From: Scyliorhinus canicula
Taxonomy: Eukaryota
Direction: 5' to 3'
NCBI RefSeq assembly: GCF_902713615.1
Contig: NC_052158.1
Span: 14,876,546-14,940,545, forward strand
DNA: 64,000 nucleotides
Shown: positions 17,117 to 61,565 of the stretch, piece after piece
Layout of the letters: each line of letters starts with the position of its first letter
How positions within the stretch are numbered: the stretch's first letter is position 1
Translations under genes and position numbers: made by a program
Notes under the pieces: model-generated
Seen by the model: the letters and a program-made list of their open reading frames with translations, nothing else
What the model was told of the DNA's origin: nothing
The model's database searches: none

Positions 17117-17125
17117 TCATGGTTC
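17117..17125 (-). CDS. Ig receptor terminal exon coding part: EP*, followed by about 0.5 kb of 3' UTR
   Basis: Very strong acceptor tttctttttttttcag, phase 0 gives GAA CCA TGA. Followed by repeat-free sequence and an AATAAA at 16616-16611. Confidence 0.65.
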   Translation of the reverse strand, partial: EP

Positions 17126-18028
17126 CTGAAAAAAAAGAAATGGTGAAATGACTGGAATTTATTTGGCCACCTTTCACGACCACCGGATGCCCCATTACGC
17201 TTTACAGCCAATCAAGAACTCTGAAGTGCGGCCAATGTTGTGATGTAGGGAACCATTTGTGCGCAACAAGCCCCCACAGACAGCAATATGACAATGAGTA
17301 GCTGTGGTGGCGATGGGTGAGGGATAAATATTGGACCGGGAAATCCTCCCCACCTTTCCTCACCCTGGACTTCTTCAAAATAGCAGCGTGCCATCTTTAA
17401 CATCTAGCCCAGAGGGTCTTGGCGTAAGGTCGCATTTGTCTTATGTACTCAAGGCCCGAAAGGAGGACTTGACCACATGATCTTCCAACCCAGAGTTGTG
17501 AGTGTAACCCACTGAGCCCAGGATGACATGGTTAAAACAGGGACGGGATGGGAATAAAGTGATTGGATTGAAGAAAGGCATCTTTACGGTGACTCAAATG
17601 GAACTGGAGCTGAATGGAGGCCACCTTGGTCAATCGCCAATGATTTGCTCGAGCGCCGGCCCTTGGCTGAAACCAGTTGGTTTTGGCCGGTACGCGCACA
17701 CTGTGGAACAGCACAACGGTTGGAGGTTTCTGAGGCGCATCCTGGACTTCGCATCCATCGGAAAATCACGGCTGCCGTGATCGAGGGAGAGGAAAATGGA
17801 ACAGTGGAGACGTTCAACCTGCCCAATGATCTTTCTCGGTATCATCAGCAATGGGCTATGATCCATAAACAGAGGGCCAGAGATCAGGACAACAAAATCA
17901 TGGACTCTGAATGGGGGGGGCAGTCGTTAACAAGAATGCTGATACCAACTCAATCTCAAAAAAAGACACTGGGAACTAGAAAGTAAATAAAATGTTCACC
18001 AATCATATTGTGAATTAAAAGGACCTAC

Positions 18029-18110
18029 CTCTCTGATATCTTTTTCCACCAAGTGAGGGACAATTCCTGGATCCAAAGCATTCTCCTCCTCTAAATCCTC
18101 CAACGGTTTC
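18029..18110 (-). CDS. Ig receptor exon 9, acidic cytoplasmic tail: (K)KPLEDLEEENALDPGIVPHLVEKDIRE
   Basis: Acceptor gtttgttaag, donor GAG|gtaggt, 82 nt. Phase-2 start matches the TM exon. Acidic like ALCAM and RAGE tails. Confidence 0.8.
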
Positions 18111-18607
18111 CTTAACAAACAGACATTAGCTAAGCTTCATGATAAAAGGATGCCTCATTATCAGCTGGTCAAGGTAGAAAGCAGTTGAGTTACACCAGGC
18201 TCTATCTGTGTTGAGTTACATGCAAGGCCTCAGGCTCCATCCCGTGTCTGTGCTGAGCTACCCAAGGTTTTGATCAGGCTTCATCTGGCGCTAAGTTATA
18301 CATAGCAAGACCTAAGGCTCCATCCTAAATCTATGCTAAGTTACAGACAAGGCTTCAGGCTCCATACTGACCTGTGCTGAGGTACACATAACAAGCTGCA
18401 GGATTCTCCGCCAGCGGGGTCCTCTGCTTTGCCGCAGCACACCCTCGCCCGTGGGTTTCCCGGTGGTGTGGGATGGCCACGATGGGAAACCCCATTGGCC
18501 GACTGCCGGAATAGAGAATCCCACTGCTGTCAGGGGTGTGCCGTGCCAGAAAACAGGGCTGGTGGGACGGAGAATCCCACGCCTTTGGGAAATACCCGGG
18601 TGTGGAT

Positions 18608-19875
18608 CAGTGCTGCACTATTGTACGATCAGTACTAAGGGAGAGCTGCACTGTCAGAGGGTCAGTACTGAGGGAGTGCTGCACTGTCAGAGGGTCAGTA
18701 CTGAGGGAGTGCTGCACTGTCAGAGGGTCAGTGCTGAGGGAGCGCTGCACTGTCAGAGGGTCAGTACTGTGGGAGTGCTGCACTGTCAGAGGGTCAGTAC
18801 TGAGGGAGTGCTGCACTGTCAGAGGGTCAGTTCTGTGGGAGTGCTGCACTGTCAGAGGGTCAGTACTGAGGGAGTGCTGCACTGTCAGAGGGTCAGTACT
18901 GAGGGAGCGCTGCACTGTCAGAGGGTCAGTACTGAGGGAGTGCTGCACTGTCAGAGGGTCAGTACTGAGGGAGTGCTGCACTATTGTACGATCAGTACTA
19001 AGGGAGAGCTGCACTGTCAGAGAGTCAGTACTGAGGGAGTGCTGCACTGTCAGACGGTCAGTACTGAGGGAGTGCTGCACTATTGTACGATCAGTACTAA
19101 GGGAGAGCTGCACTGTCAGAGGGTCAGTACTGAGGGAGTGCTGCACTGTCAGAGGGTCAGTACTGAGGGAGTGCTGCACTGTCAGAGGGTCAGTACTGTG
19201 GGAGTGCTGCACTGTCAGAGGATCAGTACCGAGGGAGTGCTGCACTGTCAGAGGGTCAGTACTGAGGGAGTGCTGCACTGTCAGAGGGTCAGTACTGTGG
19301 GAGTGCTGCACTGTCAGAGGGTCAGTACTGAGGAGTGCTGCACTGTCAGAGGGTCAGTACTGGTGGGAGTGCTGCACTGTCAGAGGGTTCAGTACTGGAG
19401 GGAGTGCTGCACTGTCAGAGGGTCAGTACTGAGGGAGTGCTGCACTGTCAGAGGGTCAGTACTGAGGGAGTGCTGCACTGTCAGAGGGTCAGTACTGAGG
19501 GAGTTCTGCACTGTCAGAGAGTCAGTACTGAGGGAGCACCGCACTGTCAGAGGGTCAGTACTGAGGGAGTGCTGCACTGTCAGAGGGTCAGTACTGAGGG
19601 AGTGCTGCACTGTCAGAGAGTCAGTACTGAGGGAGAGCTGCACTGTCAGAGGGTCAGTACTGAGGGAGTGCTGCACTGTCAGAGGGTCAGTACTGAGGGA
19701 ATGCTGAACTGTCAGAGTCAGTACTGAGGGAGTGCTGCACTGTCAGAGGGTCAGTACTGAGGGAGTGCTGCACTGTTAGCGGGTCAGCACTGAGGGAGTG
19801 CTGCACTGTCAGAGGGTCAGTACTGAGGGAGTGCTGCACTGTCAGAGGGTCAGTACTGAGGGAGAGCTGCACTGT
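18608..19875 (+). repeat. 33-bp minisatellite (cagtactgagggagtgctgcactgtcagagggt)n
   Basis: About 38 units. The 11-aa periodic ORFs are a by-product. Confidence 0.95.
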
Positions 19876-21871: not shown

Positions 21872-22001
21872 TTCTCTGTCTTCTTCCTGTGGTAGCACAT
21901 GTAGTATGCTATGGTAGTGGAGAAAGCCACCAACATTAACGTCACTATGATTCCAATAACCATGCCAGCCCTCTTCAGCGACTTGGACTTTCCATGATGA
22001 T
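21872..22001 (-). CDS. Ig receptor exon 8, transmembrane: (D)HHGKSKSLKRAGMVIGIIVTLMLVAFSTTIAYYMCYHRKKTE
   Basis: Translated by hand. About 24-aa hydrophobic segment followed by a basic stop-transfer sequence RKK. Acceptor ttgcttgcag, donor AA|gtgagt, 130 nt, phase 1-2. Confidence 0.92.
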
Positions 22002-24313
22002 CTGCAAGCAATAATATCGAGCTGTAACAGTACACCCATGGAGGAGGTCAGCGGGAAATAAACATACAGATAAAATTCTTTCCCTTGCCGTTAAATTACT
22101 CCATGGCCTCCCTTCCCGTACCAGCCTCCCCGAACAGGCGGCGGAATGTGGCGACTAGGGGCTTTTCACAGTAACTTCACTTGAAGCCTACTCGTGATAA
22201 TAAACGATTTTCATTTCATTTCTTCACGGGCCCTTTGACCTGCTTCAGTCTTAAACCCCGGAGGAACAGGATGAACTTGCCAGCCCCTTCCGGCTTGCAG
22301 GTAGGTTCACCCTCTCTGTTAAAATGGCAGAGGGGGGGAATGTCACGTGACTGCCTTAAACACTCGTCTGCCAATCTCACTCCGGTTGTAGAATTAACAC
22401 GTGGGTAAGATTGAATCAGACTGTGGGCATCCTCCTGACGGGTTTCATACCTGTGGAGTGGCTTTCTTCGGCGAACACTGAAATGAAAGTTAAGAAAGCA
22501 AAATGAGAAAATGTTGAGGCAAAATCGTTCCCCCCCCCCCCCCCCCCCCCCCCCCCCGCTCCCTCCCCGCATTTAGGAGCTGATTTACTTTAGTTCTTGA
22601 GTCGTTGGTGACACTCGGGCAGGGAATGCCACAGTGACCAGGGAATGTTTAACCCACTCTTCTTACCCCACTCTTACCAAAGAGTGCCAGCTGTGGCCTA
22701 GTGGATAGTACTGCCAGCTCTGAACCGACTCCAGTACATAACCTAGGCTGATACCCCACCGCTGAGAGGGAGTGCTGTCCCCACATGCTCTCTCGGGCAG
22801 GTGTAAGTGGTCCCATAGCACTATCTCGAGGGAGAGCAGGCGGGGTGGGGATGTTCGACCCTAAGCCCTGCCCAATATCTATCCCTTCACCAACCCCACT
22901 GAAGCACCATCTGTTCCATAATTAATTGCGGCTCGTGGGATCCTGCTGTGCACAAATTGGCTGTTGTTCAGCTTACACGGTAAAAGTGACTCCGCTTAAA
23001 AAAACAATCCGGCTGTAAAGTGCTTTGGCACTGCCTGGCATTGTGAAAGGGGTGTATAGAAATGCAAGCTCTGCAATTTTTTCCCCCCATTTAAGGTGCA
23101 ATTTAGCGTGGCCAATCCACCGACTCTGCACATCTTTCACGCAGACATGGGAAAAATGTGCAAACTCCACACGGACAGTGATGTGGGGCCGGGATCGAAC
23201 CCGGGTCCTTGCCGCCAAGAGACAGCAGTGCTAACCATTGCGCCACCATGCCACCCGTTCTGTTTTATTTATCCAGTGACTCTTTGTCTCCAGTTTGTCT
23301 GTCTCCAGAAGGAGCTGTCTATCGCAGGTACCTTTACCTCACTCAGTTAGTCGTTGCCTCCCATGCGAATGCCAGCAGGCTATTCGACTAGGTGGGCATC
23401 ATGGTCCAGCCCGACCTTGTCCTCAACCCCCACCCAATCTCACACATGCCAACATTCCAGCCAGAGTCACTTGCACAGGGAATCCTGGTCCTGAATCCCA
23501 CCACCGTTCCCAAATCCCTCCTCTCCTACAATGCAGAGGTGTTCTACTGCCTTATTCGTTCCTCAGCTCACGTTGCGGAAGTCTTACAGCATCTGACAGT
23601 AGGTTTCCACACTTGGGCCACAAGGGGTCTCAGTAAAGATGGTGTTGAATACCTTCAACCAAGCCATCAATAATGCCACTAGGATGTTGAACTAGGGTGC
23701 TCTTTCAGAGGGTCGGTGCAAATTCAATGGGCTGAATGGCCTCTTTCTGCACTGTAGAAATTCTATGATTCTATGACAGCAGGCAGAGGATGTCATGATC
23801 ACTCTATCTTTCAGCACTGTGTCCCCGCCTGGGCCCTGAAACACACTTGCAGCATGGGAATCACTAAATTTACACGCGTTCTGAGCGGAACTGATTTGAT
23901 TGCAACACCAACGGATTATTCCTCACTCAATGGCGGATCAAGCATCCAGCAGTTCTTCAATGAACATTAGATATGGGGAGGCATGGCGGCACATTGGTCA
24001 GCCCGGTTTGATTCTGACCTTGGAGTTGACTGTCTCAGTGGAGTTTGCACTTTCTCCCCGTGCCTGCGTGGGTTTCCTCCGGGTGCTCCGGTTTGCTCCC
24101 ACAGTCCAAAGATGTGCAGGTTAGGTGGATTGGCCATGCAAAATTGCCTCTTAGTATCCAACGGTTAGGTGGAGTTACGGGGCTAGAACGGGTGGGGTGG
24201 GGTGGGGTGGGGGGAGTGGTGGGCCTAGTTAGAGTGCACTTTCGAAGGGGCGGTGCAGACTCAATGGGCCGAATGGCCTTCTTCTGCACTGTAGGGATTC
24301 TATGATATCTTAC

Positions 24314-24349
24314 CTCCTGGTCCATTTAACTCATTGTTATCTTCTCTTG
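24314..24349 (-). CDS. Ig receptor exon 7, 36-nt stalk: (A)REDNNELNGPG
   Basis: Strong acceptor tttctttctgtattcctccag and donor GAG|gtaaga, symmetric phase 1-1, located between the last Ig exon and the TM exon. Confidence 0.8.
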
Positions 24350-24789
24350 CTGGAGGAATACAGAAAGAAACCAATTGAATCAGAAAACTGCGAGTAATAA
24401 CATATCTGTTACAGTACATTTGTTGGCAGTCTGACAACACCTTGTTTTTGAAATTCTCACATTCATCTTCAAGCCCTGCCATAGCCTCGTCCCTTCCTCT
24501 CTCTCTCTGTGACCGCTTCTAACCCTCCGGGATATCTGTGCTGCTCCAATCCCGGCCCCTTGAGCACTCCCAATTCGGTGGCCGTGCTTTTGGTTGGCTG
24601 GGGTCTGAGCTCTGGAATTCGCTCCATGATCCTCGCTGCCCATTTCTCTCCTCCACAATCGTCTCCTTAAAACCTAACCCCCTTGACAAAGCTTTAGCTC
24701 GCCTGACCCTCCATCACCTTATGTGGGTCGTAGTCCAATTCCGCTTGCTAACTCTCCTGTGAAGCACCCTTGGATGGTTCACTGCATTA

Positions 24790-25630
24790 AGGCAAGGACA
24801 TAAGAAATAGGAGCGGGAGTAGAGCCTAGACTGGGGCTGGTTTAGCACAGTGGGCTAAACAGTTGGCTTGCAATGCAGAACAAGGCCAGCAGCGCGGGTT
24901 CAATTCCCGTACCGGGACTGGAATGTGGTGACGAGGGGCTTTTCACAGTAACTTCATTGAAGCCCACTTGTGACAATAAGTGATTATTATTATTATGCCT
25001 GTTGAGCCTACTCCGCCATTCTATATGATCACGGCCGATCCTGGCTTCAACACCACTTCCCCGCCAACTCCCCGTATCCCGTAATTCCCCGAGAGACCAA
25101 TATCTGTTCGTCCCAGCTTTAAATGTATCCAACCCCGGAGTACCGGCAACTCCCTGGGGTAGAAAATTCCAAAGATCCACAACCTTTAGGAAAAACCTTC
25201 TTCTCATCTCATCACAAAAGATCGGCTCCTTAAATCCTGAAACTCTGTGTCGTTCCTCCCCCCCCACCCCACCCCCCCCACCCTTCCCCCCCACCCCACC
25301 CCCCCACCCCACCCCCAACATGTTCTAGACTCCCCGACCAGCAGAAACAAAACTCTCAGTGCCCACTTCAAAATCACATAGGTTTCAATGAGATCGCCTC
25401 TCATTCTTCCAAACTCCAGCAAATACAGGCCCAATTTACCCAATCTTTCATAAAGCAACCCCCCCCCCCCCCCCCGTCATCCCAGGGACCAGTTTCATGA
25501 ACCTTCCCTGTACCTCCTCCAATACACAGGGTTCCAGATACGGCCTCATGACCAAAGCCCTACACAATTGTGGCAAGACTTCATTACTCCTGCACTCCAA
25601 TTCCTCCTTGTAATAAAGGGCCAACATACA
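24790..25630 (-). mobile_element. Degraded CR1 3' fragment with a nested short SINE
   Basis: YERLGKLGLYLLEFGRMRGDLIETY motif and VVDLWNFLPQ. Confidence 0.75.
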
Positions 25631-26393
25631 ATGCCAAGTGCAGGCCGCTGTGGTTTAGCCATTTACATTAGGTTGGTGACGACGGGGTTTAGCTGCCCTA
25701 CCCATCGATGACATTGGGGGGCTCACCATCAAAATAGCCGTGCCCACAGCGGTGTCCTGAAGTAGATCTACCCATTCCTGGGGACGCCAGGCCAATCCTG
25801 CAGGCACCAACCCACAGTAGGAAGTTGGACAATCTTTAGTTCCATGGTGATGCCTCCCATTGCTGTCTGTGGGAGCTTGCTGTGCACAATTTTCCTTTCC
25901 TGCGCTGTTTCCTGCATTGCAACAATCGTCAGACTTGGGATATCCAGAGGTTTTTAAAAATCTATTCTTTCTGTGGGCAAGGCTAGCGTTTGTTGCCCGG
26001 CCCTAACTGCCCTTGAACTGAGTGGCTTGTTGGGGCCACTTCGGAGGGGCAGCTAAGAGTCAGCCGCGTTTGCTGCGGGGCTGGGGGGGTCACATGTAGG
26101 CCTGACCAGCTAAGGACGGCAGATTTCCTTCCCTGAAGGGACTTTGTGAAGCAGATGCATTTTCGACGATAGTAGGCATGGTCACCGCTACTGAGATTCG
26201 CTTCCAGGTTCAGTCCTCGAATTTACATTCCACCAGCAGACGTGGTGGGATTCGAACCTCATGACCCCCGGCGCATGAGCCAGGTGAAAAACCACTACCA
26301 CTACGCCACCAGTCTCCCCCACCCCTTCCCCCGAAAGAGCATGATGTAAATGCCCCTACTGTTGCAGTCTATGTCCAGGAGGGAAAGGCCTAC

Positions 26394-26526
26394 CTCTCAC
26401 TTGAATGGCCACGCTAGCTGATTTGGCGTTGAAGTCGAAGTCAAAGACAGTGCACTGGTACTCTCCTTCGTCCTGCTTCGTCACCGCCTGCAGCGTGTAC
26501 TGGGCCGAGTCGCTGAACTGTATTCC
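26394..26526 (-). CDS. Ig receptor exon 6: GIQFSDSAQYTLQAVTKQDEGEYQCTVFDFDFNAKSASVAIQVR
   Basis: Canonical Ig motif L..V...D.G.Y.C. Acceptor tctcag, donor G|gtaggc, 133 nt, phase 0-1. Confidence 0.93.
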
Positions 26527-27529: not shown

Positions 27530-28925
27530 GGTTTAGTTTTATTTTGTTCCTTTACGGGATGTGGGCGTCGCTTGTTAGGCCCAAAAGTTATCGCCCATCC
27601 CTAGTTGCCCTCCAGAAGGTGGTGATGAGCTGCCTTCTTGAACCGCTGCAGTCATAGAGTCCCTGCAGTGCCCATAGAGTTTGAACCGACCCTTCGAAAG
27701 AACACCCCACCCAGGCCCACACCCCCAATCCCCGTAACCCTATCCTAAGCTTTGGGCACTTAAGGGGCAATTTTAGCACGGCCAATCCATTTGGCCTACA
27801 CATCTTCGGACTGTGGGAGGAAACCGGAACACCCGGAGAAAACCCACGCAGACGCGGGGGGAAGAACATGCAGACTCCACACGGGCAGTCACCCAAGGTC
27901 AAAATCAAACCTGGGACCTTGGAGCTGTGAGGCAGCAGTGCTAACCACTGTGCCATCGTGCCACCATGCAGTGTAGCTACACCCACAGTGCTGTTGTTTC
28001 CAGGGTTTTGATGAAGGAACAGTGATGTATTTCCAAGTCAGGATGGTGAGTGGCTTGGAGGGGAACCTCCAGGTGGTAGGGTTCCCAGGTATCTGCTGCC
28101 CTTGTCCCTCTAGATGGCAGTGGTCGTGGGTTTGTAAGGTGCTGCCGAGTTGGGGAGGGATCATGGAGGGGATGCGGAATCAATAACCTAACTCCTGCCA
28201 GAGGGGCGTGGGTTCAGCTCAGGTGCCCATTTTACACCCTGCCCGGTTTTGTGAAGGGTGAGCTGGGGGAGGTGGGACTGGAGTATAAACTGGTGTAGGC
28301 CGCGTTCCTGCTGGGTGGGAGAGGGGGTGGGGGGGGGGGGGGGTCGAGCTACAGCACATGGGTCAAAAGCTGACCGGAAACTCCTCGTTCCCACCAATAA
28401 GCCGAGCGTTGACCCTGCAGGTTGACACCAGCAGAAAGATATAACCAGTGACACCACCACCTGCGTTACAAAAAGCAACAGGTTATTGCTACTCCACTGA
28501 TGGCGGGCTGGTGAAACAGCAATCCTATGATTTCTGAAAGGAATTGGTTGGGTAGTTGTGGAAAATAAACCTGCAGAGCCACGGGGATACAGGGGGGTGG
28601 GGCGAATGGGACTGACTGATTGTTCGATTCAGACCCAGTGAGAAGATGATGGGCTGAATGGTCTCCTTCTGTACTTGGAATGACTCTGACGTTCTGTGAC
28701 TCCACAGGTGCAGCTTTGTGCGCTCTAAGTGTGTTGCCTGAGGAGCCAATCTGTGGGATCGAAGCCAGAATCTCCCTTAAACATACTCCACAACCACCAG
28801 AGGGGACTATTCGCTTGCTTCGATACCGGGAAAACAGGAATCCTACCCAGACACTTGAAGAAACGTCGATCAGCTTCATTCGGCAGGGATCAATATCACC
28901 CAGCCATTGGGTTGTTGCAACTTAC

Positions 28926-29053
28926 GTCTTTTTCCCACATATATTTTTCTGGTGGAAGGTTGGTGTCAGCAGTACAATTCAGGGTGATGGTGTCACCTTC
29001 TCGTATCACGTCGTTGAGTGGGCCCACTTCTATTGTAACGCCTTCTATTGGAT
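28926..29053 (-). CDS. Ig receptor exon 5: (Y)PIEGVTIEVGPLNDVIREGDTITLNCTADTNLPPEKYMWEKD
   Basis: Acceptor ttcccgtgtacag, donor GAC|gtaagt, 128 nt, phase 1-0. Resembles ALCAM YPTEQVTIQV..IKEGDNITLKC and ends W.KD like RAGE. Confidence 0.93.
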
Positions 29054-29589
29054 CTGTACACGGGAAAGAGGGAAAACAGATATTGCTTAGAAAGGAAGAT
29101 TTCCATTTGTGTAGCACCTTTCAGCACCTCAGGACACTCCCAAAAATGCTTGACTGCCAATGAAGTGCCTTTGAAGCATCGTCGCTGCTGTGATTATTAT
29201 AGGCATCAATTTATGCACAGGAAGATCCCACAAACAACAATGTGATCATCGCCAGAAAATCTGTTTTTCTTCTGTTTTGCTGGCATTTGTTGAGGGATAG
29301 CGAATGCCAGGGAGAACTACCCTGGAATGGTGGCCACGGATCTTAATGCCCACCTGGGAGGGTAGTCGGGTCCCCCGGTTTAACAACTCATCCAAAAGGT
29401 GGCACCTCTGACAATGCAATAGTCCCTCAGTCCTGCACTGGTAATGCTGGTCTGGGCTTTGCTCTCAAACCTCTGGAGTGGCACTTGAACCGGTGACCTT
29501 CTGGCTCGTCACACGGCAGGGCAGGTAGCATGGACCCTTTAAGGGGGCGACCTTTCCCGACCAGGTGACCCGCTCGGGAGTGCTTGAAC

Positions 29590-32289: not shown

Positions 32290-35200
32290 CCTCCCCATAG
32301 AGACAGTAGACCAATCAACACCAACCCCCCCCCCCCCCATAGAGACAATAGACCAATCAACACCAAATACCCCCCCCCCCCCCATAGAGACAATAGACCA
32401 ATCAACACCAACCCCCCCCCCATAGAGACAATAGACCAATCAACACCAAATACACCCCATAGAGACAATAGACCAATCAACACCACATACACCCCCCACA
32501 TAGAGACAATGGACCAATCAACACCAAATACCTCCTATAGAGACAATGGACCAATCAACACCAAATACCTCCTATAGAGACAATGGACCAATCAACACCA
32601 AATACCCCCTATAGAGACAATGGACCAATCAACACTAAATACCCCTCCCCATAGAGACAATGAAACAATCATCGAATTTACAGTACAGAAGGAAGCCATT
32701 TGGCCCATCGAGTCTGCACCGGCCCTTGGTAAGAGCACCCTCCAGAGCCCATACCTCCACCCTATCCCCACACCTTCACCCTATCCCCGTTAACCAACCT
32801 AACCTTTTTTGGACACTAAGGCAATTTAGCGTGGCCAATCCACCTAACCTGCACATCTTTGGACTGTAGGAGAAAACCGGAGCACCCGGAGGAAACCCAC
32901 GCAGACACAGGGAGAACGTGCAGACTCCGCACAGTTACCCAAGCCGGGAATTGAACCTGGGACCCTGGAGCAGTGAAGCAACTGTGCTATCCAATGTGCT
33001 ATCGTGCTGCCCCCAGTGTGCTACCGTGCTGCCATCACCACCCCGCTGAGACAGTGAACCAATCAACGCCAAATACACCTCCCCAAAGACAATAGACCAA
33101 TTAACACCAAATACCCCCCATAGAGAGACTAGACCAATCAACACTAATTACCCCCCATAGAGACAATAGACCAATCAACACCAAATACCCTCCCCCATAG
33201 AGACAATGGACCAATCAACACTAAATACACCCCCATAGAGACAATGGACCAATCAACACTAAATACACCCCCCCCATAGAGACAATGGACCAATCAACAC
33301 CAAATACCCCCCTAGAGACAATGGACCAATTAACACCAACCCTCCCCCCATAGAGACAATGGACCAATCAACACCAAATACCCCCCCCCATAGAGAGAAT
33401 AGACCAATCAACACCAAATACCCCCCATAGAGACAATGGACCAATTAACACCAAAAACCAGCATAGAGACAACAGACCAATCAATACCAAATACCCCCCC
33501 CCCATAGAGACAATGGGCCAATCAACACCAAATACACCCCCCACAGAGACAGTGGACCAATCTACACCAAATACACCCCCCCATAGAGAGAATAGACCAA
33601 TCAATACCAAATACCCCCCCCCCCCATAGAGACAATAGGCCAATCAACACCAAATACACCCCCCCCCACACAGTGGACCAATCAACACCAAATACACCCC
33701 CCCCCCACAGAGACAGTGGACCAATCAACACCAAATACACCCCCCCCCATAGAGAGAATAGACCAATCAACACCAAATTCCCCCCCCATAGAGAGAATAG
33801 ACCAATCAACACCAAATACCCCCCCCCATTGAGACAATGGACCAATCAACACCAAATACCTCCCATAGAGAGAATAGACCAATCAACACCAAATACCCCC
33901 CCCCATAGAGACAATGGGCCAATCAACACCAAATACACCCCCCCACGGAGACAGTGGACCAATCAACACCAAATACCCCCCCCCCATAGAGACAATGGGC
34001 CAATCAACACCAAATACACCCCCCCACAGAGAGAATAGACCAATCAACACCAAATACCCCCCCCCATAGAGACAATGGACCAATCAACACCAAATACACC
34101 CCTCCACAGAGACAGTGGACCAATCAACACCAAATACCCCCCCCCATAGAGACAATAGGCCAATCAACACCAAATACACCCCCCCCCCATAGACAATAGG
34201 CCAATCAACACCAAATACACCCCCCCCCATAGACAATAGACCAATCAACACCAAATACCTCCCATAGAGAGAATAGACCAATCAACACCAAATACCCCCC
34301 CCCATAGAGACAATGGACCAATCAACACCAAATACCCCCCCCCCATAGAGACTATGGACCAATCAACACTAAATACCCCTTCCCCATAGAGACAATGGGC
34401 CAATGAACACCAAATACCCCCCCCCCACAGAGACAGTGGACCAATCTACACCAAATACACCCCCCCCCATAGAGAGAATAGACCAATCAACACCAAATAC
34501 CCCCCCCCCATAGAGACAATGGACCAATCAACACCAAATACCCCCCCCCCATAGAGACAGTGGACCAATCAACACCAAATACCCCCCCCCATAGAGACAA
34601 TAGGCCAATCAACACCAAATACCCCCCCCCCCACAGAGACAGTGGACCAATCAACACCAAATACACCCCCCCATAGAGAGAATAGACCAATCAACACCAA
34701 ATACCCCCCATAGAGACAATGGACCAATCAACACCAAATACCCCCCCCCCCCCATAGAGACAATGGGCCAATCAACACTAAATACCCCCCCCCCCCATTG
34801 AGACAATGGACCAATCAACACCAAATACACCCCGCATAGAGACAATGGACCAATCAACACCAAATACCCCCCATAGAGACAATGGAACAATCATAGAATT
34901 TACAGTGCAGAAGGAAGCCATTCGGCCCATCGAGTCTGCACCAGCCTTTGGAAAGAGCACCCTATCTAAGCCCATACCTCCACCCTATCTCCACACCTCC
35001 ATCCTACCCCCATTAGCCTACCTAATCTTTTTGAACACTAAGGGCCATTTAGCATAGCCAATCCACTTAACCTGCACATCTTTGGACTGTGGGAGGAAAC
35101 TGGATCACCCAGAAAAAACCCACGCAGTCACGGGGAGAATGTGCAGACTCCAACAGTGACCCAAGCCGGGAATCGAACCTGGGACCCTGGAGCTGTGAAG

Positions 35201-35500: not shown

Positions 35501-35576
35501 AATCTTCTCAGGAGTGGGAAATACTGTGCTTTGAAAGCAGATTGCCACTCCCTTATGCTACTTCAACCAAAACACT

Positions 35577-41634: not shown

Positions 41635-44600
41635 AATCTTAATTTTGACCCCCAAAAATGTTTATCTGATAGCACAGATGGCGCTGCAAGCTACCATGGC
41701 CAGTATAATGGTTTACAAAGTAAAATTGCTGATATGGCTGATCAACATGTTCATATATGGTGCTATGCCCATGTCTTGAATTTGGTGATAACTGAAACAA
41801 CAAAATGTTGTGTGCCTGCAATTTCTTTTTTCAATTTGCTCCAGAATATAGCAACTTTTGTGAAAGCATCATACAAGAGAATGGCTGTATGGATAGAAGT
41901 TGTTGGAAAACATCTAGGACAAGAAAAAATGAAACGATTAAAGCTAATTGGTGAGACCAGATGGTCAGGAAAATCCAATGCAGCAACAACTATATTTGGA
42001 CGTTTTGATGATGCCGCTGCCAGTACTTTCGTAAATCTATTGACATGCTTATCAATGATACAAGATTCAGAAAACAAATTGATGCAAAAACAAAACATGA
42101 AGCAAATGTTTTACTTCAAAGTCTTCTAAAGTTTGAAACCATATTGACAGCATTTACTTACTTGTATATATTTGAAACTACAACCCCGTTATCAAGTTAT
42201 CTACAGACAAGTGGTTTAGATATGTTCACTGCATGGAGTTTGGTAGATTCAGCTACAACAAAGTTGAAGGAACAGACAAGAACATTTGATAACGTTCACA
42301 GCAAGGCTTTGGAATTTGTAAATAAATGTAATGACAGGATTTCACAGATGAATATGGATGAAAATCAAACATTGGAAATTGATGCGTTGGAAACAGCATT
42401 GCCAGTTAAGAGGCAGAGGAAGAAGAAAAGAATGGCAGATGAGCTTATTGATGATGAAAGGAATTCCTCAGATTCTCTAGCTGCTTTTCAAGTAAATGTG
42501 TTTAACCTAATAATGGATCGCATTGTCCAGTCACTAGAATCATGCTTTGTACAACACAAACAGTTGTATAAAGATTTGTCCTGCTTGGACCCAGCAAAGT
42601 TTAAAACTATTGCAGAGAAGGGCCTTGAAGATGAAGCATTGGAAGGTATTATTAAGCTGTTTCCACAAATCAGCAAAGATCAAGTAATATTGGAATTGTT
42701 TTCTTTTGCTTCAAACTTTGATGTATTAAAGCTATTGCTTAATGATGGTGAGAATATGGATTCCAGTTGCAACAATTGTAAAATTTGCAGCACTTGCCCA
42801 TCATGTGTACTAAAAATTCTGGCATCCAACAGACTTCATGACAAGGCATATGATAACCTTTATGAACTTTATAAAATCATCTGAACACTATCAGTTACTC
42901 ACGTCCAATATGAGAGGACATTTTCAAAGCTAAAGATCATAAAGACAAGGTTAAGAAATTCGCTATCTGAGAAGAATTTGGAATCATACATGTTGCTATC
43001 CATTGAAAAGGAATTGTTAGATGAATTGGGTGCAGAAGCAATTATTGGCAGATTCGCACAATCATCTAGCGAACACAAACGATTGCTCTTAATATAGTGG
43101 ACTGCATGCAATGCTCTATTGTGCTTTTGAACTATCTTAATGTGTAAATTTTGCAGTAAACTATTTAAAAATATCAACCAATTACTTAAAATTTAAAAAA
43201 ATAAATAAATAATTCTATTATAACATTCTGTATCTACATTTGGTATCTACTGTCAGTAATACGTACAGTACATGTACACTGTAATTACTACGAAATACAC
43301 ATTTTTTCCACAAAAATTTTAATTGTACCCTTTTTTCCACATGTATTTTTTGAAAATTTAATTTATTCGTTATGAAAATTAAATGATAGCATTGTAGTTG
43401 TGGGTGGGCCCCCTTTGTCTCCTGGCAACCACTATTTTTAGACCCAGTCCGCCACTGGTACAGGGGTATTACTGTAATACCTATATATACAATATAATAC
43501 AACAGTGGTGACTACCACAGAATTGAAATCTGAAACCTTCCCTCCTACACCAGCTGTTTAGCCACGGGTTCAGCTGTTTCTAGCTTCAGAAGCATGTGGC
43601 ACAGGGAGTAATCCTAAGATTCCAGTTGGGGCTGCTCCAAGTCAGCTGCACTCTTTGTAAACTCCCGGCTCCACCCGCATTCTTTGAGAAAATGTAGGAA
43701 ATGAAAGGAGCATCTCGCTCCCTCCTCAACAAACTCGCTTAGTCACCAAACTCCCATTACAGCACTCTAATGCTTCTTGAAGTCAGCAATCCTGTGCAAA
43801 ATGATGTGCAATATGGTCATGTCTGATTTTCTACTTTAACTTAAGGCATATGCAGAGAGCGCAGGAGTCTGGTGTTGAAATGGAAGATCAGCCATGGTTA
43901 TATTGAATGGCAGAGCAGGCTCGAAGGACAGAATGGCCTACTTTAGTTCCTATTTTCTATGTTTCCATGTAACTCCACTTTCCTGCCCACTCCTCATATC
44001 CCTTGAGTCGCTGAGAAACCAAATATATGTTTATCTCAGTCTTAAATGCATTCAACAATGCAGACGTTACAACACTCCTGGAGAATTCCAAAGATACACA
44101 ACCCTTTGAACAAGGAAATTCATCCTCATCTCAATCCTAAATGATCGATCCCTTATCCTGCGACTGTTTCCCTGTTATTTAGATTCTCCGGTGGAAACAA
44201 CCACTTAGTGTCTGCCCTGTCAAACCCCACCACAATGTGATTCTCCAGGTGTGGTCTTGCTAAATCCCTGGAGATTGCAGCAAGACCTTCATATTCTTGG
44301 ATACCAATTCCCTTGCAATAAAGGCCAACATGGCAATTGCTGCCCTAATTCCTTCCTGTCCCCAAAGGCTAACTTGTTAATAATAATAATCTAATAATCT
44401 TTATTATTGTCACAAGGAGGCTTACATTAATAAGAAAATCCCCTAATCGCCATACTCCGGCACCTGTTTGGATACACTGAAGGAGAATTCAGGACGTCAA
44501 AATAACCGAACAGCACATCTTTCGGGACTTGTGGGAGGAAACTGGAGCACCCGGAGGAAACCCACGCAGACACGGGGAGAAGGTGCAGACTCCGCACAGA

Positions 44601-51263: not shown

Positions 51264-51304
<41 letters not shown>

Positions 51305-52867: not shown

Positions 52868-52955
52868 CATTGCCATTCGGTTGTAGCACTTTCCCATTCT
52901 TGTACCAGGTAACATTGGGGATGGGATAGCTGTCCATCACGACACACTTTCCAAT
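52868..52955 (-). CDS. Ig receptor exon 3: IGKCVVMDSYPIPNVTWYKNGKVLQPNGN
   Basis: Acceptor tcttctctgcag, donor G|gtgaga, 88 nt, phase 0-1. Aligns with ALCAM LGDCISEDSYPDGNITWYRNGKVLHP (B-strand Cys, C-strand Trp). Confidence 0.93.
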
Positions 52956-54457: not shown

Positions 54458-54522
54458 CTCAGAACGTGTGTCAACAGTAATTGTCATGTAGTTTGCTGTC
54501 AACTCAGGTTTGGCTGGCCGCT
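54458..54522 (-). CDS. Ig receptor exon 2: (E)RPAKPELTANYMTITVDTRSE, start of first Ig domain
   Basis: Acceptor ttcattttcag, donor GAG|gtaatg, 65 nt, phase 1-0. P.KPE motif as in ALCAM KQPSKPEI and RAGE IPGKPEI. Confidence 0.88.
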
Positions 54523-54564
54523 CTGAAAATGAACATAGTTATGTTAGCTCTTGGCAGCACATAG

Positions 54565-54813
54565 TGTTAACATGTACGAGATGCTGTGGTATGAAGAGGC
54601 AAGAGTTCAGCTCCTTTTTCACCAACACACCTTTAATGGTTCAAACTCACTCTGCACAGGACTCTACAGATCATCACAAGCTCCAGAGTCCACCTGAAGC
54701 CCCTTTACATATCAGTGTCAATCATTGAACACTTAACATAAATGAGACAATCTTTGAACACTTAACATAAATGAGACAACTAATTGCAATGTCTCTTAAC
54801 CCATTACTTAACA
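54565..54813 (-). mobile_element. Short solo LTR
   Basis: tgttaa...ttaaca inverted termini, near-perfect 5-bp TSD catag/cacag. Confidence 0.6.
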
Positions 54814-56409
54814 CACAGTCTGTCACAGTTACCCATCATGCTTCCAATGTGTTATAGATAACAAAAAACTGATAGTAGATGCTATATCTGTCTGTCTATC
54901 TCATCTATCAATCTTTTATTCTATCAAACAACTGATTGATCAATCCATGAATTGATCATTGTATTAGCTGCTCTGTTTATTTGTCTGTCTATCTGCCCTT
55001 CTATCTATCTTATCTTTCAATTTATCACTCTATTAATCAAATTATTCATCTATCCATTAATTGGGGGCAGCACGGTGGCGCAGTGGTTAGCACTGAAGTC
55101 TCACGGCGCCGAGGTCCCAAGTTTGATCCTGACTCTGGGTCACTGTCCGTGTGGAATTTGCATATTCTTCCCATGTGTGTGTGTGGGTTTTACCCCCAAA
55201 ACCCAAAAGATGTGCAGGGTAGGTGGATTGGCCACGCTACATTGCCCCTTAATTGGAACAAATGAATTGGGTACTCTAAATTTCAAAAAAGATCTATCCA
55301 TCAATTGATCATTACACCAAATGGTTTGTTTATTCGTCTGTCCATCCGCCTACCATTCCGTCCATCTATCTATCTGCTGTAAGTTGCTTAGCCTAGCTTT
55401 GAAATGATTACTGAGATGTCGGTGTGTTCAACTGGCTCATTTTATACAACTGAACTATGTACAGCTGTCCATGATCAGGGGGCAGAATTCTAGGTTTTCC
55501 CCACTGGGTTTGCAAGTGAGGAGATGGAGGGGGGTGGGGGTGGGGAGATTGAACATTTCACAAGTAGATTTCTCGCTGGGTTGCCACCCACCTGAACCTC
55601 TCTGAAATCCTAGGCCCAGGTTGTCCCACCCATCCTTGCTGCAGTGGCCAAGTATTGACCACTTAACAACTGTGTCCTGCCCGGTCCCAGTTTTCAATCA
55701 TTGATCTCCCCGTGGAACCCATTGAGTCCGGGTTCCCCAGGTAGGGGGAGACGGAAGTCAAATACCTGGGGCTCGTTAGGAGCAACGGATAAAAGCAGGC
55801 CCAACTCAGGGCCTCGTGTAACAAGTCCTCCCAGCTAGGATTGCTACTGAGAGTGAGGGGCAGCATTACACAGACGATTGTAAATATGTAAATCAATCCT
55901 TCTTTGCTTACTGCAGCTTTCCTCTGAGTTATTAGAATATTCTGATCCCCAAACTCTAGGTTCCTTTTTAATAATCTAATAGTAAACATAATTGTTGTCA
56001 CAAGTAGGCTTACATTAACACTGCAATGAAGTTACTGTGAAAATCCCCCAGTTGCCATATTCTGGCACCTATTCGAGTACACAGAGGGAGAATTCAGAAT
56101 GTGCAAATTACCTAACAGCACGTCTTTCGGGACTTGTGGGAGGAAACCCACGCAGACATGGGGAGAACGTGCAGACTCTGCACAGACAATGGCCCAAGCC
56201 GGGAATCGAAACCAGGTACCTGGCGCTGTGAAGCAACAGTGCTAACTACTGTGCAACTGTACCACCATGGGATAATAAAGTTTAGAGGAAAAATGACAAT
56301 ATTTGTATGAATAAAACAGAGAAAGAGAGAGGGTGGGATTAACCGTTCCGCCAGCCGTGTTTTCCTGAGCGCCGCGTTCCTCGCCGGCAGCAGGATTCTC
56401 TGTTCCCGC

Positions 56410-56650
56410 TACAGAGATACGGTACAGAGATGTGCTACAGAGATATGGTACAGATACGGTACAGAGATGTGCCACAGAGATATGGTACAGATACGGCACA
56501 GAGGTACGGTACAGATACGACAGAGAGATGTGCTACTGAGATACGGTACAGATACGGTACAGAGATGTGCTACAGAGATATGGTACAGATATGTCACAGA
56601 GATACAGTACAGATACGGCACAGATATGGAACAGAGATTTGGTACAGCGG
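56410..56650. repeat. Low-complexity (acagagatacggt/acagagatgtgct) repeat
   Basis: Directly visible 11-13-bp units. Confidence 0.85.
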
Positions 56651-56762
56651 CACAGGTCACAGGTGACCATGAAGGGTAGGATCCTTGTAACATCCCAATA
56701 TGCTCACTGCTGCCCGTTAAGGAGGGAGTCCCGTTGTTCAGTGACATGGCTAACACTTAATT

Positions 56763-57410
56763 GACCTCCCAAGTGAATATCCCTCCTTTTTCGGGACAAT
56801 CCTCCAAAGTGACTATCCCTCCTTTCCCAGGATCCCTCCAAAGTGACAATCCATCCTTTCCCGGGATCCCTCCAAAGTGACAATCCATCCTTTCCCGGGA
56901 TCCCTCCAAAGTGACTATCCCTCCTTTCCCAGGATCCCTCCAAAGTGACTATCCATCCTTACCCGGGATCCCTCCAAAGTGACTATCCATCCTTTCCCGG
57001 GATCCCTCCAAAGTGACAATCCATCCTTTCCCAGGATCCCTCCAAAGTGGCTTTCCATCCTTTCCCGTGATCCCTCCAAAGTGACTATCCATCCTTTCCC
57101 AGGATCCCTCCAAAGTGACTATTTATCCTTTCCCAGGATCCCTCCAAAGTGACAATCCATCCTTTCCCGGGATCCCACCATAGTGACTATTCCTCCTTTC
57201 CCAGGATCCCTCCAAAGTGACTATCCATCCTTTCCCGGGATCCCTCCAAAGTGGCTTTCCATCCTTTCCCGGGATCCCACCATAGTGACTATCCATCCTT
57301 TCCCAGGATCCCTCCAAAGTGACTATCCATCCTTTCCCAGGATCCCTCCATAGTGACTATCCATCCTTACCCGGGATCCCTCCAAAGTGACAATTCTTCC
57401 TTTCCCGGGG
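56763..57410. repeat. 34-bp minisatellite (ggatccctccaaagtgactatccatcctttcccg)n
   Basis: Spacing 34 bp (56831/56865), about 19 units. Confidence 0.95.
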
Positions 57411-58191
57411 TAACCAAGGGACAGATAGTCTCGCCAGCTCTGCCCATAATCCCAGGAATGAAAAACTCGAGGTGTTTGGATGAGGGGAAGGCGGAGGAGA
57501 GTCAGAGCGAGACAGTGAAACCCTGGGCATGCAGGTCACATTCCTGCTGTCAGCAACTCTCCCAGCCAGGGCTGACTCAAAAGGAGCAGTGGAAACTTTC
57601 CAGACTGTTTGTGAAGTGTTTCTCTCTGCGGTGCATGTGGGCTGCTGGTGGGAGATATCAGCGCGCAATCTGTGCCTTGGCGTGAGCTTTCCTTTCTTCC
57701 AATTCCTCCTGCAGGCTGATGGCAGCAGATTGTGCCTGACTCACGGTCAGTCATAACAGGCCTGTCTGCCTCTGGGTGACAACAGGCGCCATCCCAGACC
57801 CGCTTGGCTGTGGGAGGGTGAGGTGCGGCAATTGTGTTTGTTTTACACCGACTGATTCCCATCTCACTGCCATCTACTGATCTGGTTATCTGCGAATAAC
57901 TTGCACAGAAAGGATCCTCCTCCGCCTGCAACCCAACAAGGGCTGAATTCAGGGGGTTGGGCACTCACTTCACAGCCACGGCTTCAGGTTTCACCCAGGC
58001 AAGCCAGCACAGGTTGGTTCTTTCCTGTAGTGCAAGAGAAGCAGCAGCCGATTCGCACACTGGAGGCTCCTGTGTAGAGCAGCATTTCATTAACTGGACA
58101 ATGGGATTATGACCGAGACAGGCAAAATTCCCCCGCTCTCCCGGGAATCACACAGTGTCCCCGCCCCCCACACAGGCACACCCCTTATTGC

Positions 58192-60680
58192 CCCTCTGAC
58201 AGAGCAGCACTCCCACAGTACTGACCCTCTGACAGTGCAGCTCTCCCTCAGTACTGACCCACTGACATTGCAGCACTCCCTCAGTACTGACCCTCTGACA
58301 GTGCAGCACTCCCTCAGTACTGACCCTCTGACAGTGCAGCACTCCCTCAGTACTGACCCTCTGACATTGCAGCACTCCCTCAGTACTGACCCTCTGACAG
58401 TGCAGCACTCCCTCAGTACTGACCCTCTGACAGTGCAGCTCTCCCTCAGTACTGACCCTCTGACAGTGCAGCACTCCCTCAGTACTGACCCTCTGACAGT
58501 GCAGCACTCCCTCAGTACTGACCCTCTGACATTGCAGCACTCCCTCAGTACTGACCCTCTGACAGTGCAGCTCTCCCTCAGTACTGACCCTCTGACAGTG
58601 CAGCTCTCCCTCAGTACTGACCCTCTGACAGTGCAGCTCTCCCTCAGTACTGACCCTCTGACAGTGCAGCACTCCCTCAGTACTGACCCTCTGACAGTGC
58701 AGCACTCCCTCAGTGCTGACCCTCTGACAGTGCAGCACTCCCTCAGTACTGACCCTCTGACAGTGCAGCACTCCCTCAGTACTGACCCTCTGACAGTGCA
58801 GCACTCCCTCAGTGCTGACCCTCTGACAGTGCAGCACTCCCTCAGTGCTGACCCTCTGACAGTGCAGCTCTCCCTCAGTACTGACCCTCTGACAGTGCAG
58901 CACTCCCTCTGTACTGACCCTCTGACAGTGCAACACTCCCTCAGTACTGACCCTCTGACTCTGCAGCTCTCCCTCAGTACTGACCCTCTGACTGTGCAGC
59001 GCTCCCTCAGTTCTGACCCTCTGACAGTGCAGCACTCCCTCAGTACTGACCCTCTGACAGTGCAGCACTCCCTTAGTACTGACCCTCTAACAGTCCAGCA
59101 CTCCCCCAGTACTGACCCTCTGACAGTGCAGCACTCCCTCAGTGCTGACCCTCTGACAGTGCAGCACTTACTGATCCCCTGACAGTGCAGCACTCCCCCA
59201 GCCCTGACACTGAAAGTCCAGCAGTCCTTCAGCATTGAACCCTTGACAGTGTGGCACTCCCTGTACTGCCCCTCCGACAGTGCAGCTCTCCCTCAGTACT
59301 GATCCTCTGACAGTGCGGCACTGCCTATGTACTGACCCTCTGACAGTGCAGCACTCCCTCAGTACTGACCCTCTGACAGTGCAGCATTCCCTTAGTACTG
59401 ACTTTCTGACGGTGCAGAACTCCCTCAGTACTGACCCTCTGACAGTGCAGCACTCCCCCAGTACTGACCCTCTGACAGTGCAGCACTCCCTCAGTGCTGA
59501 CCCTCTGACAGTGCAGCACTCCCTCAGTACTGATCCCCTGACAGTGCAGCACTCCCCCAGCCCTGACACTCTGAAAGTCCAGCAGTCCTTCAGCATTGAA
59601 CCCCTGACAGTGTGGCACTCCCTGTACTGCCCCTCCGACAGTGCAGCTCTCCCTCAGTACTGACCCTCTGACAGTGAAGCACTCCCTCAGTGCTTACCCT
59701 CTGACAGTGCAGCACTCCCTCAGTACTGATCCCCTGACAGTACAGCACTCCCCCAGCCCTGACACTCTGAAAGTCCAGCAGTCCTTCAGCATTGAACCCC
59801 TGACAGTGTGGCACTCCCTGTACTGCCCCTCCGACAGTGCAGCTCTCCCTCAGTACTGACCCTCTGAGAGTGCAGCTCTCCCTCAGTACTGACCCTCTGA
59901 CGGTGCAGGACTCCCTCAGTACTGACCCTCTGACGGTGCAGGACTCCCTCAGTACTGACCCTCTGACGGTGCAGGACTCCCTCAGTACTGACCCTCTGAC
60001 AGTGCAACACTCCCTCAGTACTGACCCTCTGACTCTGCAGCTCTCCCTCAGTACTGACCCTCTGACTGTGCAGCGCTCCCTCAGTTCTGACCCTCTGACA
60101 GTGCAGCACTCCCTCAGTACTGACCCTCTGACAGTGCAACACTCCGTCAGTACTGACCCTCTGACAGTGCAGCGCTCCCTCAGTACTGACCCTCTGACAG
60201 TGCCGCACTCCCTCAGTACTGACCCTCTGACAGTGCCACACTCCCTCAGTACTGACCTTCTGACAGTGCGGCACTCCCTCAGTACTGTCCCTCTGACAGT
60301 GCAGCACTCCCTCAGTACTGACCCTCTGACAGCGCAGCGCTCCCTCAGTACTGACCCTCTGACAGTGCCGCACTCCCTCAGTACTGACCCTCTGACAGTG
60401 CCACACTCCCTCAGTACTGACCTTCTGACAGTGCCGCACTCCCTCAGTACTGACCCTCTGACAGTGCAGCATTCCCTCAGTACTGACCCTCTGACATTGC
60501 AGCATTCCCTCAGTACTGACCCATCTGACATTGCAGCATTCCCTCAGTACTGACCCATCTGACATTGCAGCACTCCCTCAGTACTGACCCTCTGACAGTG
60601 CAGCACTCCCTCAGTACTGACCCTCTGACATTGCAGTGCTCCCTCAGTACTGACCCTCTGACTGTGCAGTCCGCCCTCAC
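58192..60680 (-). repeat. Same 33-bp minisatellite in the opposite orientation, with a higher-order insert repeated three times
   Basis: About 70 units. Insert cagccctgacactctgaaagtccagcagtccttcagcattgaac at about 59199, 59558 and 59754. Confidence 0.95.
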
Positions 60681-60899
60681 TACTGCACGTTATTCCCCTC
60701 CAACGACACATTAGTTAAAAGGCTCTTTGCCATTTGGAATTCACACCTGTCAGGCAAATGATCTGAACCCAAATCCTGACAGCAATTGACAAGTTCGAGC
60801 ATAAAGCAATCTTGCTCTGAAAGGACTTTAAAAGAAACAATCCTGGGAGAGAGAGGTAGGGAACTCCGTACTCTAACCATGTCTGAAATCCTCACCCTC

Positions 60900-61410
60900 G
60901 TGATTAAAACCTAACTGTAACCAAATACGAAATCTTATCCCAATTTTGACCCTATCTTGAATCGTAGCCGTAACAATGACCATTAACTGAGTCCTAACCA
61001 CAGCCACAATGTAACCCTATTCCTAATTTCATCCCGTAACATGACCCAAACTCCAATCACAATTGAACACAGGCTCACACCCTATCGCGAACCCTAACCC
61101 GAAACACGAACCCTTACCCTATCCTAAACTGAACCATAACGCAAGCCTTACCAGTATCTCTAACCCTCTCCCTTACCCTCAGACTAAACAAACCTCTCAC
61201 CATAGCCAAGACCTGAACCCCATTCCCAACTCTAATCTTGTCCCCCAATTGGCCCCGAATCTTATTCCTAGCTCCAGCTATAACCCTAACCCTAATGCCA
61301 ACCTTAGCCTTAACCGTAACGTAGACATATCTCTATCCCTAACTCTAATTCCAGCCATGAACCTGAGTGATTCCTAACCCTCGCCCTGCTCCCAACCCCT
61401 ATCCCTGTAC
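60900..61410. repeat. Degenerate (CCCTAA)n-like hexamer repeat in intron 1 of the Ig gene
   Basis: Recurrent ccctaa/cctaac/ccttaa/ccgtaa hexamers. Confidence 0.65.
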
Positions 61411-61495
61411 ATGACCCTGAATCCTCGGAGCTTAGGAACTCCAGGATAAATAAGATCAACTTTGCTGTGAGGAAGGATGAAGTGGGAGTACTTAC

Positions 61496-61565
61496 CATGC
61501 GGGGAGACAACGTGAGCATAAGCTGAGAGAAGGAGTGCACAGGTCAGAGCAGAAGCTATGGCCAT
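61496..61565 (-). CDS. ALCAM/MCAM/BCAM/AGER-family Ig receptor exon 1, signal peptide MAIASALTCALLLSAYAHVVSPH
   Basis: Good Kozak context (agcATGG), hydrophobic leader, 70 nt ending in phase 1 at a strong donor G|gtaagt, the typical IgSF leader exon. Confidence 0.8.

Follow-up and report, generated by a model that had tools for sequence, protein, structure and literature searches.

The locus described here raises the question of how a vertebrate receptor gene came to encode only two immunoglobulin (Ig) domains, and to which receptor lineage it belongs. It lies on the minus strand of a 64,000-nt stretch of Scyliorhinus canicula DNA (NC_052158.1; "the window" below), which is N-free and has a G+C content of 50%. 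The gene belongs to the group of ALCAM, MCAM, BCAM and AGER, the last encoding RAGE. Its two-Ig compactness goes back to two events, an old three-Ig layout found in elasmobranchs and coelacanth, and a recent loss of the V-domain exons specific to Scyliorhinus. Most probably, the catshark gene is orthologous to a three-Ig receptor (V-D2-D3) conserved in sharks, rays and coelacanth, and its V exons were lost from intron 1 in the Scyliorhinus lineage.

The locus is the already annotated S. canicula gene for XP_038671907.1. The 58-aa translation of its 177-nt exon 4 matches residues 76-133 of this protein at 100% (1.84 billion representative proteins searched), and exons 2 and 10 are part of the same exact match. 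XP_038671907.1 is the RefSeq "CD166 antigen-like" protein of S. canicula, 314 residues long and encoded on LR744042.1 at 14.88-14.95 Mb, with a coding range that corresponds to window positions 61565-17117. The initial annotation of this stretch, which was made from the sequence alone, is to be amended in that the gene is not undescribed; the coelacanth protein and two skate proteins related to it already carry the name AGER at NCBI. The same annotation joined ten minus-strand exons in frame into a 305-residue protein. All ten are found with the lengths it gave and with AG acceptors and GT donors, and their frames join, but the public model adds a 27-nt exon (22477-22451), and the resulting eleven-exon splice product equals XP_038671907.1 residue for residue. 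Removal of this exon keeps the frame and yields 305 residues; the shorter form, if made, would be an in-frame skip of the 27-nt exon. The matches of the exons to orthologues in many species, together with a conservation of exons exceeding that of introns, lie far beyond chance.

The 314-residue product is a predicted type I membrane protein composed of a signal peptide, a C2-set Ig domain (D2), a second Ig domain (D3), a stalk, a transmembrane (TM) helix and a cytoplasmic tail. It has only two Ig domains because the N-terminal V domain is lacking. Pfam assigns C2-set_2 to residues 29-120 and Ig_2/Ig_3 to residues 141-219. The AlphaFold model, computed with an alignment of 15 orthologues as input, shows two confident Ig domains (predicted local distance difference test 88-96), a disordered stalk, a TM helix at residues 252-284, and a disordered tail. 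The stalk is flexible and about 30 residues long, and the acidic tail comprises about 30-40 residues. Both cysteine pairs reported by the initial annotation are intact (C49/C112 and C160/C201), as are its sequons NVT (59) and NCT (159), to which a third, NDT (74), is to be added across the joint of exons 3 and 4. The protein has the CD80-like C2-set D2 followed by an Ig C2-type domain that marks the ALCAM/MCAM/BCAM/AGER group, and its best sequence and fold matches fall inside this group. ALCAM is the top sequence match in the PDB, with RAGE also strong, and the top Foldseek matches of the model are RAGE, ALCAM, MCAM, and BCAM. A feature search of the ESM Atlas returns BCAM, ALCAM, MCAM, and AGER clusters, all at 0.97-0.98, and does not tell the four families apart.

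The five-Ig layout of ALCAM, MCAM, and BCAM (V-V-C2-C2-C2) is not that of the catshark gene. Domain hidden Markov models (HMMs) and Pfam reveal no Ig-like exon or open reading frame (ORF) between exon 6 and the TM exon, including the interval 24350-26393, where the initial annotation had likewise seen no D4 or D5 exon. Its further reading, that D3 is followed at once by short stalk exons, the TM exon and an acidic tail of small size, holds as well, and D4 and D5 are lacking in every orthologue recovered. These orthologues are one-to-one, occur in at least 14 other elasmobranchs, and measure 409-446 residues when full-length. A full-length query from Mustelus matched those of the sharks and rays Heptranchias, Carcharodon, Pristiophorus, Stegostoma, Hemiscyllium, Heterodontus, Chiloscyllium, Pristis, Amblyraja, Rhinoraja, Narcine, Mobula, and Hypanus. 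The same query gave a distant multi-Ig match at 21% identity, which was dropped after inspection, as it bears no family resemblance. An exhaustive search with the 58-aa exon 4 peptide yielded eight matches, four of which are clade members, and led to the coelacanth protein XP_006013436.1 (421 residues). With word-based searches, a profile of the clade alignment returned two clade members only, and the coelacanth query returned only itself. NCBI names within the clade vary from CD166-like to MUC18-like (one ray) and "advanced glycosylation end product-specific receptor" (coelacanth, Amblyraja, and Rhinoraja).

Full-length members of this clade display the order V-D2-D3-stalk-TM-tail, which is the RAGE layout. 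Conservation of the TM segment is high between coelacanth and sharks, and the short tail contains an acidic motif that is likewise conserved. D4 and D5 are absent from all 17 orthologue models that were aligned or included in the tree. Since the full-length orthologues are all V-Ig-Ig-stalk-TM-tail, the lack of D4 and D5 is ancient rather than an assembly defect. The maximum-likelihood tree, built from these 17 clade members only and not including mammalian AGER, ALCAM, MCAM or BCAM, mirrors the species tree, with Scyliorhinus and Mustelus grouped and the rays monophyletic; the members are therefore regarded as one-to-one orthologues. The AGER layout (V-C1-C2, short stalk, TM, short acidic tail) is thus that of the other elasmobranchs and of the coelacanth, and the catshark protein has the same layout minus V.

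In the catshark, V-domain exons are lacking from 10 kb upstream of the start codon to the stop codon. A tblastn search of the window with the Mustelus protein finds all other exons and nothing for residues 22-127. A V-domain HMM built from 12 orthologues reaches at most 10.5 bits anywhere in the window, with its top match inside a minisatellite; in the same window, the HMMs of D2 and D3 reach 39-75 bits. The V HMM is also negative over the 10 kb upstream of the ATG. As a positive control, it recovers the two V exons of the skate locus, located between the leader and D2, at 94.6 and 40.5 bits. The equivalent position in the catshark is intron 1 (54523-61495, minus strand), which is devoid of V exons. 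In an independent assembly of Scyliorhinus torazame, collinearity with the upstream region and intron 1 of S. canicula is maintained, and the V HMM is negative there as well. As V is lacking in both catsharks and present in Mustelus, its loss is placed after the split from Mustelus and before that of S. canicula and S. torazame. The reading frame is preserved because both introns flanking V are of phase 1. Intron 1 now consists largely of tandem repeats: a 33-bp minisatellite forms an array of 2.5 kb (58192-60685), and a further array has units of 34 bp (56765-57409); any role of these arrays in the deletion would be speculative.

The remainder of the gene looks functional. Exons 2-11 are all found in S. 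torazame, free of gaps and stops. Identity between the two species reaches 95.7% in the exons and 90.0% in the flanking introns (2.8 kb of intron). The ratio of nonsynonymous to synonymous divergence (dN/dS, Nei-Gojobori method, S. canicula versus S. torazame) is 0.24 overall, with a dS of 0.11 that equals the intron divergence. By region, it amounts to 0.30 in D2, 0.05 in D3, and 0.32 in the stalk, TM helix and tail, D2 having the highest dN of the three parts (0.050). The Scyliorhinus branch of the 17-member tree is no longer than that of Mustelus. Contigs of public runs labelled as RNA contain 22% of the sampled words of 28800-29200, about a quarter of which is exon 5, and 34-46% of those of 61400-61760, which fits exon 1 plus about 100 nt of 5′ untranslated region. 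DNA-like runs contain 50-94% of the sampled words of those stretches. These shares fit a spliced, expressed mRNA.

Does the clade belong to the AGER lineage, or is it an ALCAM-like truncation? The initial annotation left both possibilities side by side. The balance leans slightly to AGER through the affinity of the V domain, the matches of the coelacanth protein and a PHF1 linkage. A V-only profile of the clade matches human RAGE V at 59-60 bits over the full domain, versus 27 bits for ALCAM V1, and BCAM is absent among its matches. The alignment with RAGE V is almost gap-free, and among solved V domains aligned at full length, that of RAGE is the closest to the V of the orthologues. Over V-C1, the clade profile scores 126 bits against RAGE, versus 75 bits for BCAM D1-D2. 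The coelacanth protein scores 141 bits with human RAGE and 122 bits with human ALCAM. In Foldseek searches of Swiss-Prot with the coelacanth model and with the catshark model, the four top-ranked entries are in each case mammalian RAGE proteins, with alignments that start at the first domain retained, cross the TM helix and extend into the tail, and a RAGE-first order is again found against the PDB for the catshark model.

Genomic linkage adds to these comparisons. C12orf57/C10 is the downstream neighbour of the receptor gene in three sharks, and the receptor-C10 order is common to S. canicula, S. torazame, and Heptranchias. In the window, the C10 (C12orf57) orthologue is found at 7117-9210 on the minus strand, about 8 kb downstream of the receptor gene, and one of its exons (7306-7181) shares 97.6% identity with the C10 portion of a fused gene model in Chiloscyllium. 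On the Chiloscyllium scaffold, the order is the receptor, C10/C12orf57, and then a PHF1-type Tudor domain, at the exon of which the scaffold ends. This domain scores 89 bits with human PHF1, versus 70 with PHF19 and 66 with MTF2. Human PHF1 is located at 6p21.32, near the major histocompatibility complex (MHC), and the PHF1-type linkage suggests a link of the locus to the MHC paralogon. In S. canicula, gene calling leaves the 10 kb upstream of the receptor empty, and no neighbour genes are seen in the Hypanus flanks. TRIM genes (RING, B-box, PRY/SPRY) flank the receptor in the skate Amblyraja radiata (locus L001, 55960-57379) and in S. torazame (locus L002, 1-1249 and 10001 onward); in the old annotated model of the latter, the upstream TRIM gene is fused directly to exon 2.

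Several findings weigh against reading the gene as a V-less member of an AGER-related clade. In the two retained domains, the catshark protein is much nearer to human ALCAM (146.9 bits) than to the C1-C2 of human RAGE (75.5 bits), as the initial annotation had noticed from the Ig residues, and in Foldseek alignments the identity of D2-D3 is 35-38% to ALCAM versus 20-24% to RAGE. The same order is given by the whole-length elasmobranch clade profile (232 bits for ALCAM versus 163 for RAGE), and Mustelus follows it (167 versus 117 bits). The human RAGE V domain is strongly basic and binds acidic ligands such as AGEs, S100 proteins, and HMGB1; the V domains of the clade are not basic but neutral to acidic (net charge −7 to +3, isoelectric point 4.7-9.2), and the catshark protein has no V at all. 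PBX2 and RNF5 are not immediate neighbours within the flank of about 10 kb that was covered, where C12orf57/C10 and TRIM genes are found instead. As for the V loss, an assembly gap of 1.6 kb occupies the expected place of exon 1 in S. torazame, and the absence of V in this species holds for the remaining intron only. The junction of leader and D2 is predicted, from a RefSeq model that is computational, and the function of a V-less protein is a matter of pure inference.

The indirect scores hence conflict, with V favouring RAGE, D2-D3 favouring ALCAM and the coelacanth protein favouring RAGE. A higher score with ALCAM, itself slowly evolving, is expected from a slowly evolving orthologue of a fast-evolving RAGE, and the similarity of D2-D3 is therefore not decisive; moreover, the remaining catshark residues would look ALCAM-like because the catshark lost the domain most like RAGE. 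A quartet of bit scores (shark, coelacanth, RAGE, and ALCAM) was rejected as evidence, bit scores not being additive and rates differing strongly. As far as these comparisons go, the three-Ig clade being the non-mammalian counterpart of AGER has a slight edge over its not being so, while orthology to mammalian AGER is plausible but unproven.

A competing explanation, to which somewhat less than an even chance is given, holds that the clade is a separate old paralogue of ALCAM, MCAM, and BCAM that lost D4 and D5 independently, that AGER arose later in mammals, in line with the proposal of Sessa et al., and that the catshark gene is a doubly truncated ALCAM-like adhesion molecule. Besides the closeness of D2-D3 to ALCAM in the catshark and other elasmobranchs, it is favoured by the TM and tail region of the profile, which aligns to the TM helix and tail of ALCAM at 20.5 bits, by the lack of PBX2 and RNF5 next to the gene, and by the failure of an amphibian, sauropsid or ray-finned fish orthologue to turn up in searches that were, however, weak. 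The literature also holds AGER to be restricted to mammals (PMC3903589). This explanation must nevertheless accommodate a clade V domain whose match to RAGE V is twice as strong as that to ALCAM V1 and nearly gap-free, a coelacanth member whose best match is RAGE in both sequence and fold, an architecture identical to that of RAGE, and a PHF1 linkage pointing to the MHC paralogon and not to the ALCAM, MCAM or BCAM regions. The ALCAM similarity on which it draws would be expected anyway if mammalian RAGE evolved fast.

Two other explanations concern the missing V domain, and both are very unlikely. The V exons might have been missed or collapsed in both catshark assemblies, for example within the minisatellites of intron 1, which would make the 314-residue model an annotation artefact. 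The two arrays of intron 1 could indeed be collapsed, an N gap lies there in the S. torazame assembly, and the leader-D2 junction is a predicted one. However, the window is free of N, the S. canicula sequence matching the S. torazame gap is complete and V-free, and two independent assemblies of two species share a collinear intron without V exons; moreover, the sole S. canicula match to the full-length Mustelus query is the V-less protein, the leader of which is spliced to D2 in frame at good splice sites. Alternatively, but with hardly any likelihood, what remains after the V loss would be a decaying, transcribed pseudogene without function. In favour of this, the lost domain is the main binding domain in both RAGE and ALCAM, and D2, now N-terminal, evolves with the highest dN. 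Such decay is contradicted by ten recovered exons that are intact and gap-free in both Scyliorhinus species, by the overall constraint and that of D3 measured against a dS equal to the intron divergence, by the absence of branch acceleration relative to Mustelus, and by the occurrence of the exons in many RNA runs.

If the gene is a V-less orthologue of the three-Ig receptor, the V-domain exons would have been deleted from intron 1 in the Scyliorhinus lineage, and the leader would now be spliced directly and in frame to D2. The RAGE V domain binds most ligands of this receptor, and the ALCAM V domain is responsible for trans adhesion and CD6 binding. The V-less protein would presumably still reach the cell surface without the contacts made by the distal V domain. 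It may act via D2-D3 and the TM helix and tail, by lateral (cis) association or through a membrane-proximal partner, a mode of action expected because D3 is the most constrained part. It would then be a natural counterpart of N-truncated RAGE or of delta-N ALCAM. An N-truncated RAGE isoform has been described in humans, and amino-terminally truncated ALCAM interferes with ALCAM clustering. The V-less catshark protein resembles the human isoform; in the catshark, the loss is genomic and not that of a splice variant.

Comparison with the known systems can be summarized as follows. RAGE (human Q15109; PDB 4lp5 and 4p2y) resembles the orthologues in its V and two Ig domains, short stalk, TM helix, short acidic tail, and length of about 400-420 residues. 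Foldseek, which ranks it first, aligns catshark residues 24-301 to RAGE 119-404 (C1-C2-TM-tail). It differs in having only 20-28% identity in C1-C2 to the catshark protein, in the basic charge of the human V domain, and in the PBX2 and RNF5 genes that flank mammalian AGER and not the catshark gene. The TM helix and tail do not appear recognisably RAGE-like. ALCAM/CD166 (PDB 5a2f; Q13740 and P42292) shows the highest similarity to the catshark D2-D3, over ALCAM residues 127-328 with a TM-score of 0.51. It differs by its five Ig domains and 583 residues, D4 and D5 being absent from the catshark gene and all orthologues, and by a V1 domain that is a poor match to the clade V. MCAM/MUC18 and BCAM/Lutheran align to the catshark D2-D3 at 27-32% identity; they differ by five Ig domains and long cytoplasmic tails, and their similarity is below that of ALCAM.

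The exons of the catshark gene, all on the minus strand, follow this domain order. Exon 1 (61496-61565, 70 nt) harbors the start codon and signal peptide and ends with a phase-1 donor, CATG|gtaagt; its leader and residues 1-20 of the protein from Mustelus share 75% identity. D2 is encoded by three exons. Exon 2 (54458-54522, 65 nt; ttttcag|...|gtaatg) carries its first strand and covers positions 1-21 of the D2 HMM. Exon 3 (52868-52955, 88 nt) contains the first cysteine and scores 26.6 bits with Pfam C2-set_2 and 39 bits with the D2 HMM. Exon 4 (36276-36452) provides the second half of D2 with the second cysteine, and matches Pfam C2-set_2 and, weakly, BCAM D2 and ALCAM D2. D3 is split between exon 5 (28926-29053, 128 nt), the best PDB match of which is ALCAM residues 245-283 (E 1.5e-8), and exon 6 (26394-26526, 133 nt), with 24.5 bits for Pfam ig and 60.6 bits for the D3 HMM. 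The stalk is formed by exon 7 (24314-24349, 36 nt; cctccag|...|gtaaga), which is identical at 36 of 36 positions in S. torazame, and by the 27-nt exon 8 (22451-22477; tttcag|...|gtatga), identical at 25 of 27 positions and with its peptide found in most orthologues. Exon 9 (21872-22001, 130 nt) encodes the TM helix and a juxtamembrane basic stretch, in agreement with the AlphaFold helix. Exon 10 (18029-18110, 82 nt) encodes the acidic cytoplasmic tail, the motif of which is conserved in elasmobranchs. Exon 11 (17117-17125, 9 nt) adds the last two codons and the stop behind an acceptor site, ttttttcag|GAACCATGA.

The introns and flanks of the gene are rich in repeats and mobile elements. The 33-bp minisatellite family occurs twice in the gene, in opposite orientation, at 18629-19875 (38 copies, in the intron that precedes exon 10) and at 58192-60685 (76 copies). 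Both arrays are also found in S. torazame, and they create long spurious ORFs on both strands. The 16-kb intron 3 harbors a long interspersed nuclear element (LINE) at 38392-41655 on the minus strand, with an ORF1 carrying a GDSL-esterase domain, an apurinic-type endonuclease, and a reverse transcriptase; the latter is divided between two ORFs, pointing to a frameshift. Plus-strand ORFs of 354, 131, and 279 residues at 36917-37981 and 41734-42884 look like one element interrupted by this LINE. They have no Pfam match at E 0.001, and may be a relic of a hAT-type transposase. The intron between exons 4 and 5 contains a 1.9-kb array of 40-bp units (33037-34893) and smaller, related arrays of 37-bp units at 32293-32671 and 35257-35504. 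Dense, G+C-rich tandem arrays with units of 25/50, 37/111, and 43 bp surround the start of the C10 gene (7592-11334). A gene-caller product of 608 residues on these arrays (locus L003, 60240-62357) belongs to no Pfam family and is probably spurious.

According to Sessa et al. (2014), Ager made its first appearance with the mammals, where Rnf5 and Pbx2 flank it within the MHC class III region (PMC3903589). The same authors describe a common ancestor and common exon boundaries for RAGE, ALCAM, MCAM, and BCAM, and a gene organisation in the cytoplasmic part that is shared by RAGE and ALCAM (PMC3903589). Their mammal-only conclusion is still cited in papers of 2025-2026. A literature search for non-mammalian AGER (coelacanth, shark, and MHC class III) yielded no report of such a gene and no source on the question other than this study, and recent papers on the amphibian MHC mention neither AGER nor PHF1. 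What is already known is the presence of the gene in RefSeq and the AGER name given to some orthologues by automatic annotation. New are the conserved clade with the RAGE layout in cartilaginous fishes and coelacanth, its RAGE-like V domain, and the genomic loss of V in catsharks with the remainder under constraint.

In its strongest form, for which the chances appear evenly balanced, the interpretation would be that the clade is the true orthologue of AGER, that RAGE dates from the jawed-vertebrate ancestor, linked to genes of the MHC paralogon, and that catsharks are a natural genomic knockout of the V domain, with the gene itself continuing to be expressed and to evolve under purifying selection. 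If this orthology is true, the origin of the RAGE lineage would be pushed back by more than 400 million years. A receptor with the RAGE layout in sharks and coelacanth would also provide models outside the mammals. The V domains of the clade, being neutral to acidic, suggest that the receptor originally served something other than the charge-driven capture of acidic ligands seen in mammals. In the catshark, V has been deleted and yet the remainder is constrained, which argues for an independent function of D2-D3, the TM helix and the tail, and the animal may serve as a natural experiment in V-domain removal.

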